DNA of 64,000 nucleotides, taken from the NCBI GenBank assembly GCA_047495785.1, contig JBLDXI010000007.1, positions 992,001-1,056,000 of the forward strand, given 5' to 3'. Numbering within the stretch: the first letter of the stretch is position 1; every line of letters starts with the position of its first letter. The notes beneath the pieces were generated by a model, which made no database searches, was not told the DNA's origin, and was given only the letters and a program-made list of their open reading frames with translations. This document shows positions 44,122 through 55,017 of this stretch, piece by piece. The translations under genes and the position numbers were made by a program. This DNA comes from Lepidodermella squamata. Lineage: Eukaryota > Animalia > Gastrotricha.

Positions 44122-46254
44122 ATGGCGTCTTCAAACCGACCGCCTGAGGCTAGACCATTCCTTCCTGCTGGAAATCAAGTATCAAACAGAAATAATGCTC
44201 TAAATATTCAGCATTTGGGTAATTTTAATTAATTTTAATTAATTGAATTTCTGTAAAATTTTTTATCAGGACCTGCTGCGAAAATTCTCATAGTTACTGG
44301 TGCTGTGATATGCGTCCTGCTGATCATTTCTTTGCTCGTTTTTTACCTATGGATATGGCCGCATCCTTGCTTTAAAATCACCGATAAATCGTCGAAAAGC
44401 CCCATCGAAATCGCCTTCGATCTGCGAAAGTCTCTAATTTACCTGATTTTATCAAAACCTCTACCGACCGGGCTTTTTAAAAGTCCGCTAAAAGTCTGCG
44501 GGAAACAGCCGAATTTCGACGCAACGCTGATGGCAGCATTCAGTCGGGTTAAATTAGCCGCGACTAAGGTCGCCCTAAAACCGGCCGAAAGCTGTTTTTC
44601 CGATAATTCAAATAGCCAAGCGATGAAATTAGTCGTGAAAAATGGCGATTATTTCTCGAATATGACAACGAGTGGCCTGGAAATATCGATTGAATTGGTC
44701 GATAAATCGCCTAAAAAGCCAGCGTTCGCCAGGCCATCGGTAAAATACCTGCATTTATCGGCTCGAAACGGCTCGCTACACTCACCGACGCCTAAGCGGC
44801 TAAAAATCGATATCGAACAGCAAAGTCAATTGCATTTCGAGCCGCCGATCGGTGTATGGCTGAGTGATTCGCTCAGTCTTTTTACTAATGACGTTTTACT
44901 ACTACCATCAAAATCCGCGGAAAATCACTGCGGCGCCCCGGCGATTGGTTTGGGAGTCGACGGTGGGATTTTATCAAAAATCGGCCAAGTTCTATCGCAT
45001 CTCATCTACTACGGCAGTTTTAGCCAGTTGGAAACCAGCGCCGGGATTACTCAATTACTTTTCGTGAAATCAGTTGAAATTTCGCAATTTACCGCTCAAA
45101 CTAACCCACTCATGTTCGATGTGAAAATGGTGAATCAATCGCTATCGGAAAGGGGGCGAGTTTTCAGTTTGAAAGAGGCCTACTTCAAGCTGGATCATTC
45201 TCTTGTTAGAGTCGATAATCTGAGTTTAAACCTCGGCGATTCTGAACTAGCTTTAAAGAGCTTCCTAACCTTCGAGGCAAATTTGTCCCATGTCAACGCG
45301 AAAGGAACAGCGAAAAAGTTGGCTGGTGGCCAGGGTGGGTCGAAAATTCAGGAGGAATCCCAGTTAGACTCACCGCCGCCTCAAATGCCAGTTGAAATGT
45401 CGTTCCGCGACTCGCATTTCAAATTTTACTTCGACTCTGACCTATTTTTCAGCCGCAAATCAGTTGAGAAAACTTCGAATCAATCTATCTCGGCCTTTAA
45501 TCGGACAGGTTTTTTTCGGATGAAGCACGTTAATGCTGCTCAATTTGGCTACGACCAGCAAAATTCAAGTCTAACCGCTGCGCTTTTAAGCGGGAATCTC
45601 GAAACAGTCCTCATCAGGTCTTCAAGTGAATTCGTCCCGGATTTAGTTACCTCACTCGTTCAACTTATGATTATTTTCAATTTCACGATTTCAAACGTTC
45701 GAGGTCAGAACGTTAAGGTGGCTATGGGTGGGTCGCCGCGTGAGACCGCCCTTCAGCTGTACCGAATCGGGAAAATTTCGAATGAAATGAAGTTTGCCTT
45801 CTCGTTTTTTGACCATTCGGTGAAATCTCGGGAAATTGCCAGCCCGAACGCGCCTTATGCCGTAATAGCTCAAGCGCTAATGTCCGGTCCTGCGAGCCCA
45901 GCAATTAACAATAATTCAAAACTTCCACTGCTTAAATCTTCTTCGCCGTCGTTGCTTGCTGCCGGTTTAAAATCGAGCTCACTAGTTTCAGCCCTAGCCC
46001 CGCCGACTGGGATGGACCTCCAGCTATGGACCTTTACGATTAACGACCTGAGAGCTGCGGCTTTCCTGCCCAGTAAAAGTTACTTTCAAATCGACCGGCT
46101 ATCCCTAAAACTTGACCCGAGTTCATCTGATTCGAAGTCTACGGAGAAAAAACAACAGGAGATTCGGAAAAATCGAACTAATAGCAGTGGTGATAAATCG
46201 ACACAAAACGCCGACAACGCATATAATTACGACGATTATTCTGCTTTTTTCTAA
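44122..46254 (+). CDS. Uncharacterised ~690-aa single-pass membrane protein, 2 exons
   Basis: ATG 44122, phase-1 intron (G|GTAATT..ATCAG) joins to the 649-aa ORF; hydrophobic helix near the N-terminus; Ser/Leu/Phe-rich remainder with beta-strand-like patterning. Confidence 0.7.
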
Positions 46255-46923: not shown

Positions 46924-49900
46924 TTAAAAGTGGAAATGGCCACTGTGATCGTCGTGCTCGTGTTGATGTTGGCTACTCGTGTATTTAACAGCCTCGTGTT
47001 TGACACGAACATTCGATTGCTGGCATTTACCCGTCGTAGCATCAGCCTGGCACGTCTCCAGATCAACGTCAGGAATCGCGCCGACAACCATGTTCGACGG
47101 CTCGCTCCACGCCGTCATTGTCTGTGACTCCTCTTCGACAACAAAAGCTACGACGGAGAAGTAGACCTTAGACCCAGCTGGCCATGACGACTTTTCAAGC
47201 GTGATTGTGCCGGTTCGGGCGCGGCCAGCTACGTCGGTCGGTTTCGATGGCAATTTGAAACTTTCGACAATTCGGCCGTCGATTTTCGGCGAAACTTCGA
47301 TTTCGTCACTGCGGCCCCAAGCATCAAGCGGGTTCGATGTAGCGTTCAGGGCATAATAGGTCGCTAATAAAATGATCAGAAAATAAATGATCAAAAAATC
47401 GTTCTTTTCAAAATTTCGATATTTCAAATTTGAAATTTTTGAAATTTTGAAAAATCAACCTTCAACCTTTTTGAAATTTGAAATTTGAATTTTGCCAAAT
47501 TTGAAATAGAAATTTTTCAAATTCAGGTCTTAAAATACTCACGTTTTCCGCTATCAACTTTCATGCCATTCCTGGCAACGGCAATCCAGGTAAACGTAAA
47601 GGTCACATTGTCCTTAGTCGGTTCAGTGCTAGCCAAGCGGAACTCAGTGCAACGAGCCGGCGGCAACGTTTCAACCAAATCGTCCGAATTGCGGCTGTTC
47701 AACTTTTTCGGCACAACAACGCGTTTCGGCTCGCTTTCGCCCACCAAATTGCGAACGTCTCTGCCTTCGCTTGAATAAAGCATAGAGTCGTTGATTCGAC
47801 GTCGGATAACAGCTGATTTTGTGCTGTACAGCGACCCGCTCTGGTCTTCGAAGCGAACATCTCGCACCTCGAAAGTGCCGATTTGAAGCTCGCGGTTGAA
47901 AGCAATGTAGTTCCATTCGTGTTTGAAACGAGCCAAGAAATTGTCAGATTTCGGGAATCCCAACAATACACGTTTTGTCTACAATTTGAACATTTTTAGA
48001 AAATAGGATTTTAAAATTAAAAAATTAAAAAAATTAGATTAAACTCACATAAAACGTTTTTCCACCATCACCCTTGACTCGAATTGTGATACCATAACGG
48101 CCAGCGTACAATGCGTTATCATCAAGGCTGAAAACACCCGAATAGATGCCGTCATTCTTGTACAAATCAACACCATCCGCGGCGAAATTTTCGTAGCTCC
48201 GCCCATCGTCCACCAACGGAATGATCCAGCGCCTGTAATAAAGCCCTAGATCAGCCTGGCTCTCAAACGCCTGACCACTCTCGACAACAGCCTCAACCTG
48301 AGCGTTCAGGACAGCCATTGATCCGAACGAAATTGAAGCAACAATAACTTGGACGTTTTGTTGAGGACGGCGCCACCATAGGGCTGGGTTGGTAATCTCC
48401 CCAACTCGAATCTTACTAGTATACATTTTACCCTCAACAGTGAACGTTTGCTGCATTGACGTATCGACAATAGTTGCCGCCGAAATTGTTACGGGTTGAT
48501 GCTTAGATTTGTAAGCTGCCGAGGACGAAATTTGAAACTGCCAGTTGCCAACTTGTGGTTTGAAATTCATAGGGCAGGACAATTTGTTTAGAGTGGTTGA
48601 AACTGTGCAATCGACGACTGATTGCGAATTCGGGTCAATTAGTGATCCGGAGACTGGGGCGAGACTTGGGTCGTAGAAGGCCGAGATCAAGTTGTCATTT
48701 GACAACCCATCGTCCAATAAAATCGGGACAGCGATCTTGCTACCAGGCTTCAACTCGGTGTTAGTCGTAGACAAAACCGCCCTAAATAAAAAAAATCGAT
48801 TATTTTACTGTTTTTTTTTCAACCAATTATTGTGTCACCTTTTGATTGTGTCATCTTGGGTCAGTTCGATTAGAGCCGATTGGAAACTGACCAAAAAGCT
48901 GTAGATGCTGTCAGCGTTAGAAATCAAGAACGATTTGCCGCCGGTTTTATCGGCAATCTTTTCCAGCTCTTTATCCGCCTCGTCCGTAATTGCGACCGTG
49001 TGAACAACAACACGCTGGGCGATAATTCCATCGATGCTGTCGTCGTAGAAATTATCGGTGAAAATTTCGCCGTTCGGCCCGCATCGGTTATTCTCGCCGT
49101 CGGTCATCAGCAACATTTGACCGCCGAGACGACCGGTTTTCTTCAGCATATCTGTCGCCAAGTTCAAACCACTTTGAATGCAGGTAAAACCATTTGGTAC
49201 GATTGCTTCAATGGCTTTGATCAAACGAGCCTAAAATAAAAAATAAAAAATATTTAAATTAGGCGAAAAATTTTAAATATAAAAATCAATCGATTAGAAT
49301 TCGATTTGAAATTGGGTCAAATTTTCCTAATATTAAAATAAAATTTCAAAACTAATGAGGTCACACCTTTCCAGCAGCATCGCATTTCTCGAAATCTGAA
49401 ACTTTGGTGGCGACATTATCAAAGGTGACCACACCCAAGTAAATCGTTGGATCGGTCAAATCGATGAACTGAGAAGCTGCCGCCTTCAAATTTGCAATCG
49501 GCTGGTCAACCATCGACCCGGATGAGTCCAGAACCAGTACGATGTAATTAGGCGCTGGGGCAATGGGTTTAACTGTCGTCGTCCCACTTCCAGATGGCTT
49601 TTGGGTAGTCGTGGTAGGGCCGCCTTTATTCTCCTCATACGCCTCGTGAACGATGATAAATTCAGGGGTGGTGTCAATGTTGGATCGTGGCGGAGTCCCG
49701 CGGCCGTTGAAATCGTCGTGGGCTAGCATGACGTCGAACGTAGCGTGGCGGTTGCAAACACGGTTGTGCGTGTTGTCCATTTCGATGTTGTGGTGGCGTG
49801 TTGCGTCGCATGAGCGGCCGTCGCAGAAGTGGATAACTTGGTCGGCGTCGAAAAGCGGCGGCGCCCAATCTGGCAGCCAGGCCAACGAGGCTGTCACTTT

Positions 49901-52493
49901 GCTTTCCTTAGCCTGAGCTGACCAGTGCAGTTGCATGTCTTCATCGCAATAAACATAGGTCGTGTCATTATCCTAAAACGAAAAAAAACAATTATCGAAA
50001 ATTTTTAAATTTAAATTAGGAAGTGGCTATTTACACCCACCTGGTGGGTGTCATAAGGTGACTATTTACACCCAGTGTTCTTAAGATGCTAAATACACCC
50101 TTTTCGGGTGTAAATAGCAAGATTAGCGCACCCACTGGGTGTAAATAGTCACCTTATGACACCCACCAGGTGGGTGCAGATAGCCTCGACCTTTAAATTA
50201 AAAAAATTAAATTAATTAAAAAAAGTGAAAAAAATTCATAAAATCTGAAAATAATGAAAACGCAAGCCGACATTTGAGCAAAGGATATTTGCGCAAATTA
50301 GGCTCATTAGCCTTAAAAATAAAATTCAATAAATTTTGAAATCGAATATTACGACATTTGAGCAAACTACAAAATTTAAATTAAACTGCTCATTTGCTCA
50401 CATGTCTTTGCTCAAATGTCGCACAATCCTTTCAAATTGGCGTTTTCGAATTTTTCAATTTTGAAATGAATTTTATTATTTATTTTGAAAAATGGATTTT
50501 CCCTCGCACTCATTGACCTTACCTGGACGCATCGCGGAATTCGTTGATCCAACAAGGCTTTGTTCGGGTTCATTTCGATTTCATTGCGCGGGAATTCGCG
50601 GAAAATTCCAAAGTGATTGAACGCGAAATGCTTGACAATATTCGGTACGACAAGTTGCGCCTCAAAATCATCCGGCGTCATCGTAGTGCCGAAGCCCTGT
50701 GCCCCGCAAAATCCGACCTGAATAGTATTCATCGTCGCTCGAACAGGCGGCGAGTCAGGCTCTACATGGACATTAGACTTGACCAAATATTCGGCCGTGT
50801 TCATTTTCTCATCAGTCCTAACAGCGTTGGCTAGGCTTGGGTCCCAATGACGGGGTAGAACTATGCGGACACTTCGGAAAACCGCTCGCTGTTCAGTTGA
50901 TTTGTACAGCAAATCGCTAGCTTTAGTAAACGAATTTTTGATCTGCTGCAACAGGTAAGGGCTATTCGTGATATTTGGGTCAATGGCGACGCGGACATTT
51001 CGGTATTCATTATTGTCGAAGGTCATTCGCGTTGACGCAGCTTTGACCTTGGCGCAGCAAACAGCGTTTTTGTGGTACAAGGAACGGCACTCGCTCAATC
51101 CGGCTTGAACCAACCGGCCGCTGGGGCATTTCGTCGCGCTCACTGGGTCGGAACCACTGAACAGGTGGCAGACGCCCTGGCCCGAGGCGCAGTCGCCTAA
51201 ATTACTCTCCATAGTCGGTCGGCACAGGAAAAAAGCCGTAATTTTCGCCCAGCGGTCGTTGCAAGGCCAAGCGTTTTGCGCACCCTGGACTGTGGTACCA
51301 ATACGGATCCAGTCGGCACAGGTTCCAGCGTTGAAACGAGCGAGGTTAAGATCGGGATCGTTCCACAGCATCTCAGCAAAAGATCCAAAGGCCTCGGGAG
51401 TCTGAAGTACGAATAAAATTGGAATTTTAGATATTCTGAATTAATAATTATGAATTTATTAAGAATTTCAGATTCCTAAATACTGATACATAGCAGAAAA
51501 TATCTTAAAATTCCCCATTATCGGGTTTTAGAGCCAGTTCCCAATTTCTAGAAATCCGAAATTTAAAGTAAAATTTGAAAACTCAAAATTGAATTTTTTT
51601 AATTTCTAGCCCGATTTTTAGAATATTGGTAAAATGTTTACCATGTGGCCACCAATGTCGAAACGATCGAAAAATAGGCTGTTAATCCTCGACTGGACAG
51701 CCAATTGCAAATTAGCCAAAATGCGTTGATAAACCAAATCCGGCCTCGTCGTAGTGAAATCATTCAGCAAAAAGTAGGCAAAAGCGACATAACTCGCAGC
51801 CTGGCAATCGCCGCGCGGAACACAGGCGTCACGGAGTCGGTCATACCCAGGCAAGATGAATGGCAGAAAATTGATGACACGTTCCGGGGCCAAATCGTCG
51901 AGGTCGCTAAGCAACTTGTCGAGGCGTTGATAGGCCGTGGTGTAGCGCGGGCTGCAGCGAACCCCAGGTGATTGGGGTGTCTGCTCAACGCAACAGGTGG
52001 TTTGTTCGCGGTACTGATTAATGCCGCAGTTGTGATTGGCATCAGCCGAGGCGGCGTTCGAACAATAACGGGGCAATACACAAGCGCCATTTCGTTGACC
52101 TTGATCGGCTCCGAGAAGGGTGTTACCTTAAAATTCGAAAAATTTAAATTTTATTAAAATTTGAAACCTCTCCGATTTACCTTTGCATGCATCTCGTTTG
52201 ATGTAGCAGCATTGGGAACCTTCCGGGCATTTGAAAGGGTTGGTGTTGTTCAACGCTTGGGATTCGCCCAAATTCTGAAGACAAACCGACTTGTTTTCAC
52301 AGGTTCCAGCTTTTTGCGAGTTGGGGCTCGTGGTACCAACTGGTTTCCAGGCACATTCAGTTGTGCCGAGGTCGCTTGATTTCCATGGCTTGAACAAACT
52401 GCCTTCGTTGTAGTAGCAATCAGCTACAGACTGGCTGGCATCGACCAGGCACGTGGCGAGTGCTGAAACCAGCACTCCAATCACTATTTTCAT
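46924..52493 (-). CDS. CLCA-like protein with N-terminal Cys-rich repeats and GH19-like insert, 8 exons
   Basis: Signal peptide; NNEYRNVRVAIDP..FTKASDLLYKSTEQRAVFRSVRIVLPRHW (CLCA_N); HFCD..HN..HNRVC; vWA VLVLDSSGSM..T..LMTDGE; LVDDG..D..KNDGIYS; canonical GT-AG introns. Confidence 0.88.
50018..50192. mobile_element. Palindromic MITE within a CLCA-like gene intron
   Basis: ~55-bp near-perfect inverted arms GGCTATTTACACCCACCTGGTGGGTGTCATAAGGTGACTATTTACACCCAGTG. Confidence 0.75.
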
Positions 52494-53643: not shown

Positions 53644-55017
53644 TCACTTGTTGCCGCAGATGGCAAGATCACTAAATTCGAGATATTTCAAAATCGAACT
53701 CGGCAATAATTCACCCAGTCCGTGCAATCGAAGTGCATCTTCCCGTGATTTCAGCCCAACGGGAAGGCAATTGACGATCGCTCGGCGGCAAATCGATTGC
53801 AAAGTGCGCGGGAAGGCCTTTCGTAACGGCTCAGTAATTCCACTGGTCAGCGATTCAGGAAACCCCGACAACGCATTATTCATCCTGCCGATATCAAATC
53901 GATTAAACATCCGAGCTTCGACGATAAATTTCATCAACACCTCAATCTGCGGCTTTACATTCACATTGTCCCGCAATAAATTGATTAACAAATTGAAAAA
54001 CGCAGCATCCTCTAATAAATCCGGCTCCAGCCGAGCGCCAAGACGAATAAGGGGTAGAACGCCGTTTTCAAGCGCCCGTTTGAACGCAAAGGTCTCCGGG
54101 GCGTATCGATACGCGATTCGAGACGCGTGGTAAAGCGACATTGCCAACGGCGAATATCGAGCCGTAAATCTATTCGTATTGCCTGGCTTCCCCAAATTAT
54201 TCACCGCATCGATTGGGGTGTTGGAAATGATAAGATTCGCAGCTTCCGGGCTTGAAACAGCTATTCGACTGACTTGATGTAGCGGAATGTTAAGGCCGGT
54301 ATCAATCGGCTCTGTCAAATCAGCGCCGAACTTGATCAAAAGGCGCAAAATTTCGGTAGCTTTCGCCGTTAACGGATTAACAGGCTGCTCCTCAAATTGC
54401 TGAAAATCGTGGATTGACAGCATTAGGGTGACTACAGTTAGTGGCTTGCTTAGATTAGTCCGATTAGGCGACGCGCCGAATTCAAGGAGAGCTTCAACGC
54501 CTTCGTCGAAGTAACTTTCAATGCAGCGATGCATTAAAGAGGCTAATAGGCAATTAGGTAAGTTGGTTTGCTTTCGTAAAATCGATCTCATCGTTTCGGC
54601 ATCTAACGACAGTCGAGCTATATGGAGGACCATCTCAATCTGAGGCAGAGGAATCGCATTGCCGTTTTTCACTTCTTCGTCGATTTGGCGTAGTAGGATC
54701 ATTTTAAGCCGATCACAGGCGTTTGTCATTGATTCATCTCGCCGCCATTCGATGAAGAGATGGAAGTCGTGGAGGTCAGAATCGACGAGTTCGAGCAAAT
54801 CGGCCGAACTCAGTGTTCGAGCAGTCCCAGGCCGGCCCGGCTGTTAATTAATCTCTGTTAATTCAAAGATTAAATTTCGGTTGGAAAATTTTACCTGAAT
54901 AAGGCAACGACTAGCGGTTTCTGACAATAATTGAGCCGTGCTGAGTAAATTATTCCGATAATTTGGCTCAGTTATCGGACATCGCCCATTGCACGCGAAA
55001 TTTGAGTGGAGTTCCAT
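53644..55017 (-). CDS. Ankyrin-like/SOCS-box protein, paralog D, 2 exons
   Basis: HSNFACNGRCPITEPNY, CAG|GTAAAA..AACAG intron, VDSDLHD, VEALLEFGASPN, ILRLLIKFGAD, FPRTLQSICRRAIVNCL..LLPSSILKYLEF. Confidence 0.88.

Follow-up and report, generated by a model that had tools for sequence, protein, structure and literature searches.

An undescribed N-terminal cassette with a predicted, highly diverged GH19-like domain on a CLCA-family protein of Lepidodermella squamata

CLCA proteins are known mainly from vertebrates as mucus-associated, self-cleaving, metalloprotease-like regulators; vertebrate CLCA1-4 are secreted proteins of this type with a VWA domain. The GH18 chi-lectins, such as YKL-40, are catalytically inactive, chitinase-like proteins that have lost the catalytic acid and serve as secreted binding modules. 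Here, we describe a gene within 64,000 nucleotides of the gastrotrich Lepidodermella squamata (the window; positions 992,001 to 1,056,000 of contig JBLDXI010000007.1, assembly GCA_047495785.1). Its product is a secreted CLCA-family protein of about 1427 residues, consisting of a signal peptide, two cysteine modules, an all-helical domain of ~175 residues with six conserved cysteines, a third cysteine module, CLCA_N, VWA, and a beta-rich region. The protein is a CLCA member with an undescribed cassette, which holds what structure prediction suggests to be a highly diverged GH19-like domain.

The window protein and vertebrate CLCA1-4 are alike in the CLCA_N-VWA-beta order, the complete DxSxS...T...D site, the 'KNDGIYS' stretch, and in being secreted. 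The window protein differs by an N-terminal cassette of ~375 residues not described for CLCA, by KHFAF in place of HExxH, by a His-rich C-terminus, and in that no membrane anchor was seen. Compared with GH19 hydrolases (PWe2 9ms7, 9eoi, KTN6 gp46 8p8e; ChiC 1wvu; plant class I/II/IV chitinases), its helical domain has no detectable sequence homology and lacks the Glu-Glu pair, the RGxxQ[IL][ST]..NY hairpin and the INGG asparagine, whereas it has six conserved cysteines of its own and lies between cysteine knots. None of the papers searched links CLCA with GH19. The explanation we prefer, with somewhat more confidence than doubt, is a CLCA protein whose N-terminal cassette contains a degenerate GH19-fold head and works as a non-enzymatic binder or scaffold.

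Architecture and continuity of the gene

From the sequence, we read one gene with short GT..AG introns on the minus strand at 52493-46924. The exons were set by hand using open reading frame (ORF) frames and splice consensus, which gave a gene model without complementary DNA (cDNA); the eight exons total 4281 nt, corresponding to 1427 codons (Table 1). The minus strand at 51000-52493 reads as the initial annotation of the window had proposed, with three GxC..C..C..CC modules ahead of CLCA_N and a helical region between the second and third, for which the coordinates of about 51222-51956 were correct. The CLCA_N model (PF08434) scored 64.4 bits in exon 3 (E 1.5e-17), well over its cut-off of 25.6, with a second piece in exon 4. 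In the Pfam VWA region that follows in exons 4 and 5, the metal site is complete, with DSSGS, the T of 'GFTC' and the D of 'MTDGEN'. Signal peptide, cassette and CLCA/VWA body read in one gene, in agreement with the undescribed secreted chimera that had been suggested.

An exhaustive HMMER search of 1.84 billion representatives with a paralog as the query returned a single protein, P0001, from a metagenome scaffold. P0001 (532 aa) is encoded by one uninterrupted ORF of 532 codons running from the signal peptide into CLCA_N (69.2 bits) and is an ortholog of the window gene. Exon 1 aligns with its residues 6-97 at 48% identity, exon 2 with residues 102-259 at 47%, and exon 3 with residues 260-529 at 57%. 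The exon 2/3 junction is exact (M259/T260), and the exon 1/2 junction shows a one-residue loop indel. The collinearity of exons 1-3 with the P0001 ORF, which runs without a break, confirms both of these junctions. A second metagenomic ortholog, P0005 (544 aa; 58% identical to P0001), is also a single ORF from the signal peptide to CLCA_N and sits on contigs of 35-40 kb with eukaryote-type genes (TTL, IFT52). The metagenome contigs of both orthologs are eukaryote-like, and a VWA ORF comes next on them.

The same architecture recurs within the genome. The matches of the CLCA_N model in the 121-Mb assembly are limited to the window gene, L003 and L029, and all three carry the cassette. L003 and L029, a diverged tandem pair about 12 kb apart on a contig other than that of the window, both have the order of signal peptide, knots, helical domain, knot and CLCA_N. 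In L002, a further locus, a signal peptide, modules 1-2 and the helical domain share one ORF. This ORF stops early and is followed by an AATAAA signal, and beyond it lies an unrelated gene with a PAN domain. Judged by its sequence, L002 looks like a stand-alone version of the cassette.

The N-terminal part could instead be a separate gene or transcript wrongly merged with the CLCA gene, a possibility that the initial annotation itself had raised. The exon 3/4 junction indeed derives from ORF frame and splice consensus. However, exon 3 by itself is one ORF crossing the boundary into CLCA_N, both P0001 and P0005 are uninterrupted through the whole cassette, the layout is repeated in L003 and L029, and the sole TATA-like element and the sole signal peptide are located at exon 1. 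As the exon 3 ORF and the single ORF of P0001 span the boundary, we rejected the separate transcript, which we consider highly improbable.

Predicted fold of the helical domain

The helical domain was analysed with each window exon searched separately, and P0001 and L002 stood in for the window protein in folding. The AlphaFold model of P0001 residues 20-376, from an 8-row alignment, had a predicted local distance difference test score (pLDDT) of 65-92 in its helical part. The model of the L002 helical domain, which is about 30% identical to that of P0001, reached a pLDDT of 77 and a predicted template modelling score (pTM) of 0.75. The best Protein Data Bank (PDB) matches of both models were exclusively GH19 members, namely phage endolysins, a type VI secretion system effector, and bacterial and plant chitinases. 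Out of about 160 residues, 125-141 are aligned in these matches, and the first unrelated row follows only 2.5-5 Z units lower. A GH19 profile identified 9ms7, 9eoi, 8p8e, 7r6s, 8xcl, 1wvu, 3hbd and 6lnr as GH19 by sequence. The models thus have the alpha-rich, lysozyme-like arrangement of GH19, and the lack of any predicted lysozyme-like fold, which would have spoken against the initial annotation, did not occur.

Several observations weigh against a GH19 assignment. None of the sequence-based methods (Pfam, PHROGs, NCBIfam, PDB phmmer/hmmsearch) ties the helical domain to GH19. Pfam scans of the window exons and P0001 gave no match to GH19 (PF00182) at E 10, and nothing from Pfam matched exons 1 and 2. 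PHROGs and NCBIfam searches returned chance rows only. When exon 2, the beginning of exon 3 up to the end of the helical domain, or all of exon 3 was searched against the PDB with phmmer, chance rows or no rows came back, and a PDB profile search with hmmsearch gave nothing; GH19 appeared in none of these. The ESM Atlas gave no usable match, and word searching with the ORF of L002 produced no match in its length range. A genome-wide scan with the GH19 hidden Markov model (HMM) did not flag the window gene and had its sole match at another locus, L018. We also compared family alignments anchored on full-length rows (A3 and A5) with GH19. When A5 was aligned by hhalign with a GH19 reference alignment of ten sequences built from phage records (A6), none of the local, low-mact and global modes gave a significant match (Prob 0.6%, E 0.1), in a test of low power owing to the shallow family alignment (effective number of sequences 2.2). 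L018 against A3 was not significant either (E 0.11). Foldseek found nothing significant with either model (E-values >1, template modelling (TM) scores about 0.4). The five L002 models span pLDDT 39-77, and the P0001 and L002 models are not independent of each other, as they rest on 8-9 sequences of one family with shared alignments.

The highest-TM rows of Foldseek, none of them significant and together spanning TM 0.39-0.47, were 9ms7 and 8p8e for the L002 model against the PDB; those from a viral library included two Lysin A rows (TM 0.42-0.47) and a predicted chitinase of COG3179 (prob 0.51, TM 0.42). A profile and Foldseek comparison of this kind had been suggested with the initial annotation; with P0001 and L002 as stand-ins, it placed GH19 among the highest-TM rows without reaching significance in either hhalign or Foldseek. 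A search of metagenome contigs for deepening the family yielded only a chance match on a phage contig (L027).

The helical domain might alternatively be a lineage-specific, disulfide-stabilised all-alpha domain unrelated to GH19, whose likeness would reflect a common helical arrangement or an AlphaFold artefact of the shallow alignment; in that case, CLCA would carry in the cassette a novel extension at its N-terminus, with an adhesive or structural role. The negative outcome of every sequence and profile test against GH19, the insignificant Foldseek results, the uneven quality of the five L002 models, and the entire central hairpin region of GH19 being without counterpart are in line with this explanation. 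It accounts poorly for the fact that two models of sequences only ~30% identical best match only GH19, from different subfamilies, over most of the domain length and at the Z-score distance from unrelated folds given above. We regard an unrelated all-alpha domain as possible but doubtful. By predicted structure, the helical domain probably has the GH19 fold, at a moderate level of confidence. The GH19 link is at the level of the predicted fold only: the proposed chitinase/lysozyme-fold domain is borne out by the models and their PDB matches, and it found no counterpart in sequence or profile searches.

Catalytic sites, cysteine modules and putative role

The GH19 sequences in A6 share the invariants E49, E58, R124-G125, T, N134-Y135, N187 (the N of INGG) and an Arg. 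In A3 and A5, E49, E58, R124-G125, N134-Y135 and N187 are without counterpart, so that the catalytic HE is lacking, as had been noticed in the initial reading; the T and the Arg are likewise not conserved in the family. No family member has the hairpin [FY]-x-G-R-G-x-x-Q-[IL]-[ST]-x-x-x-N-Y or the INGG asparagine, and two helices replace the hairpin region in both models. Structure comparison gave alignment ranges, not a residue superposition, and the register was deduced from the 7r6s ranges. The first GH19 helix is missing from 7r6s, and in both models the second helix begins where the N-terminus of 7r6s aligns; the third helix ('AASYVAFAYFLLNDF'), which had been suggested by eye, is therefore the favoured catalytic helix. 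In this register, the acid Glu would correspond to Asp in the window protein, P0001 and P0005 and to Leu in L002, and the Glu pair to Asp/Asp(+7) in the window protein.

Another register, in which 'ITxERxxNFLPF' (the top piece in hhalign) would correspond to the catalytic helix of GH19, was set aside in view of the start of 7r6s at the second helix in both models. The A5-A6 match by hhalign pairs this second helix (NFLPF) with the GH19 catalytic helix, opposite to the favoured register, and the insignificant A5-A6 and L018-A3 matches are not collinear with each other. The pairing of the last helices (SFAEMLW with SAxWFW; DWIRIGTTVQG..NDRW with DxxxVTxxINGG..DR) comes only from the L018-A3 match and motifs compared by eye.

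The remaining acidic residues raise the question of whether the domain could be active as a glycosidase or lysozyme that uses non-canonical catalytic residues and is tethered to the CLCA scaffold like L018; for example, the conserved Asp of 'LL[NR]DF' might act together with an acidic residue 7-8 positions later. The window protein, P0001 and P0005 keep Asp at the deduced acid position and Asp or Glu at +7/+8, so that residual or unusual catalysis is conceivable, which counts against a non-enzymatic head, and L018 is an active-looking GH19 on a CLCA-type scaffold in the same genome. On the other hand, L002, L003 and L029 are without these acidic residues, the family has none of the RG, T, NY and INGG asparagine that are invariant in GH19, the models show two helices where GH19 has its substrate-binding hairpin, and the register itself derives from alignment ranges. 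An active GH19 mechanism is unlikely in the window-type orthologs from their sequences, and we consider an active enzyme with non-canonical residues improbable.

The protease-like domain of CLCA shows a similar loss. At the HExxH position, the window protein reads NIVKHFAFNHFGIFREF (KHFAF), P0001 NIVKHFSFNRYGIFREF (KHFSF) and L029 VAKLFAMNRWGFGDE (KLFAM), when aligned by eye with the known CLCA motif HEWAHLRWGVFDE. The HExxH zinc site appears to be lost in the whole lineage, and with KHFAF in its place, self-cleavage by this site is unlikely. The notion of a double pseudo-enzyme in the initial annotation agrees with the loss of the canonical residues of both GH19 and the CLCA HExxH in sequence; its GH19 half depends on an identity at the level of the fold.

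The three cysteine modules have a common pattern, C-x(6-17)-[G-x-C]-x(5-13)-C-x(11-16)-C-x(5-10)-CC. All cassette cysteines are invariant between P0001 and P0005, and both keep CVLPRYC of module 2. The invariance of the cysteines in the orthologs, together with the same layout in the paralogs L003, L029 and L002, goes beyond chance. In the P0001 model, module 3 had a pLDDT of 70-84, and modules 1 and 2 were below 50. Structure searches matched the predicted module 3 weakly with 6qbk, 2rng, 6qes, 1zlh and 2k2z; with the root-mean-square deviation of 2.4-3.1 over 43-49 residues on the big defensin 6qbk, the model of module 3 weakly resembles a big defensin. The beta-defensin or big-defensin C-terminal domain and arthropod CLIP domains resemble the window modules in having six cysteines ending in CC and a G-x-C motif, whereas the window modules have longer loops and no Pfam match. 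No Pfam defensin family matched the modules, and CLIP (PF12032) was not matched in Pfam scans of exons 1, 2 and P0001 at E up to 10; the CLIP likeness is that of a cysteine spacing which we presume to be typical of these domains, whose disulfides characteristically pair 1-5, 2-4 and 3-6, as in defensins of this type. The initial label 'defensin-like' finds weak structural support for module 3, which does not extend to the poorly modelled modules 1 and 2.

L018 is the sole true GH19 in the genome according to the GH19 HMM scan (Pfam E 4.2e-8), secreted and with HET..E..GRGFLQIT..NY. Its GH19 domain is fused directly to a CLCA-type VWA and tail, without CLCA_N, and this VWA and tail are collinear with window exons 4-6. 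L018 and the window protein are alike in the CLCA-type VWA (44% identity over 64 aa, 32% over 112 aa), the collinear tail, secretion, and an N-terminal, in the window protein predicted, lysozyme-fold head. They differ in that the GH19 of L018 is recognisable by sequence and replaces CLCA_N, whereas the window head precedes CLCA_N; moreover, L018 has no cysteine-knot modules, and the head similarity is not significant (E 0.11). If the models are right, this genome thus has two versions of a CLCA-type scaffold with a lysozyme-fold head, one active-looking (L018) and one degenerate (the window protein). The only relative of L018 in a word search was P0006, a 222-aa 'predicted chitinase', and no GH19 relatives of L018 were found in bacterial and viral contigs.

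In the explanation we prefer, the CLCA family of this lineage would have gained the cassette of ~375 residues with two disulfide-knot modules, the helical domain and a beta-defensin-like knot. The helical domain, most likely of the GH19 (chitinase/phage-endolysin, lysozyme-like) fold, would have lost both the catalytic Glu pair and the substrate-binding 'RGxxQ[IL][ST]..NY' hairpin, and the CLCA protease-like domain its HExxH zinc site, with the VWA metal-binding site left intact. The protein might then be a non-enzymatic binder and scaffold, whose putative glycan-binding head could recognise chitin, peptidoglycan or a similar polymer; the adhesive CLCA/VWA body would carry this head within mucus, the cuticle, the eggshell or the gut matrix. 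The GH18 chi-lectins offer a functional analogy, as a glycosidase fold minus the catalytic acid, with binding being putative for the window protein; they differ in the fold, a GH18 TIM barrel as opposed to the GH19 alpha fold.

Such an invertebrate lineage would have rebuilt its CLCA family, with the protease motif gone and a cysteine-knot and presumed lysozyme-fold head on every copy. If the head binds chitin or peptidoglycan, the cassette would be the GH19 counterpart of the GH18 chi-lectins and would clearly exemplify how animals can recruit an enzyme fold for recognition, whether in surface immunity or in building a matrix. It might also illustrate how far the GH19 fold can drift past sequence detection. 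More tentatively still, and with the doubts outweighing the support, the cassette could represent a GH19-derived animal pseudo-enzyme family with an endolysin-type fold, possibly of phage or bacterial origin, set between defensin-like knots and serving as a chitin or peptidoglycan sensor on every CLCA scaffold of the lineage and forming with L018 a 'binder and cutter' pair for mucosal or cuticular defence.

Distribution and neighbouring features

The cassette family makes up one 50%-identity cluster among the 1.84 billion representatives. It was found only in this genome and two related metagenome clusters, in searches of which the word searches are blind to full-length (~1400-aa) gene models. 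Given such a narrow family in public data, its biological reach is probably limited to the lineage. The features of the gene and the related loci are collected in Table 1.

Table 1. Features of the CLCA-family gene in window coordinates, and related loci elsewhere in the genome
Feature	Position	Strand	Remarks
TATA-like element TATATATAAAA	52558-52568	-	about 65 nt 5' of ATG; read in sequence
Exon 1	52181-52493	-	signal peptide about 52493-52434 and Cys module 1 about 52418-52206; phase 1 end; ORF and sequence
Intron 1	52180-52127	-	GT..AG
Exon 2	51642-52126	-	module 2, then N-terminal part (first 116 residues) of helical domain
Exon 2, first part: Cys module 2 (GACVLPRYC...CC)	51990-52126	-	first Cys of module at exon 1 end
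Exon 2, second part: N-terminal part of helical domain, helices H1-H5	51642-51989	-	predicted GH19-like; models and fold searches
Intron 2	51641-51402	-	
Exon 3	50523-51401	-	single ORF: C-terminal part of helical domain, module 3, CLCA_N
Exon 3, first part: C-terminal part of helical domain, last 60 residues	51222-51401	-	TPEAFGSF..LW, GTCADWIR, CNDRWAKI, FFLC; aligns with paralog L002
Cys module 3	51051-51197	-	C-x6-C-x13-C-x12-C-x9-CC; predicted beta-defensin-like knot
CLCA_N, first part	50523-51020	-	Pfam PF08434, E 1.5e-17; KHFAF at expected HExxH position; donor CAG/GTAAGG at 50523/50522
Exon 4	49367-49972	-	CLCA_N end, Thr/Pro-rich linker, VWA start with metal ion-dependent adhesion site (MIDAS) motif DSSGS; Pfam CLCA 0.0036, VWA 1.9e-4
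Exon 5	48839-49230	-	remainder of VWA; Pfam VWA 5.8e-5; 32% identical to L018 VWA
Exon 6	48049-48781	-	post-VWA beta-rich region with CLCA-typical 'KNDGIYSGVF'; sequence; weak Pfam MG2 match 0.0043
Exon 7	47543-47978	-	without recognised domain; ORF frame and GT..AG boundaries
Exon 8	46924-47363	-	His-rich C-terminus HQHEHDDHSGHFHF; coding to 46927; stop codon 46924-46926
L029	G000:C9:2989500-2995500		CLCA gene with cassette
L003	G000:C9:3002477-3005737		CLCA gene with cassette
L018	G000:C10:550053-553328	-	ORF L018:391-1962; signal-peptide exon near 2191-2108

The His-rich tail HQHEHDDHSGHFHF (46927-46968) might be a metal-binding C-terminus, and no transmembrane segment or GPI (glycosylphosphatidylinositol) signal is evident in the sequence of exon 8 and the C-terminus. 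Intron 3 contains a near-perfect palindrome of 175 bp at 50018-50192, with 60-nt arms that are 92% complementary and 55 nt apart. It looks like a miniature inverted-repeat transposable element (MITE), and its core sequence was found nowhere else within the window. A missed exon in this intron is unlikely, as there is no coding-like ORF and the palindrome lies there.

Among the paralogs, the helical domains of L003 and L029 are without the Cys pair 'G[TS]C ... PC' that the window type keeps. L002 belongs to a tandem triplication at G000:C13:3515276-3541887 (L002, L005, L006-L008) with a period of roughly 13 kb, the unit of which consists of the stand-alone cassette gene and the PAN-domain gene. 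The cassette is intact in the first copy only; the second lacks its N-terminal part (93% identical), and stops interrupt the third (65% identical).

Downstream of the CLCA gene and convergent with it, a plus-strand ORF of 649 codons at 44305-46254 is Ser/Leu-rich with many N-x-S/T sites and matched no Pfam family. The upstream neighbour on the minus strand at 53647-54798 (gene end 53644) encodes ankyrin repeats and a C-terminal SOCS box (Pfam SOCS_box, E 1.4e-4).

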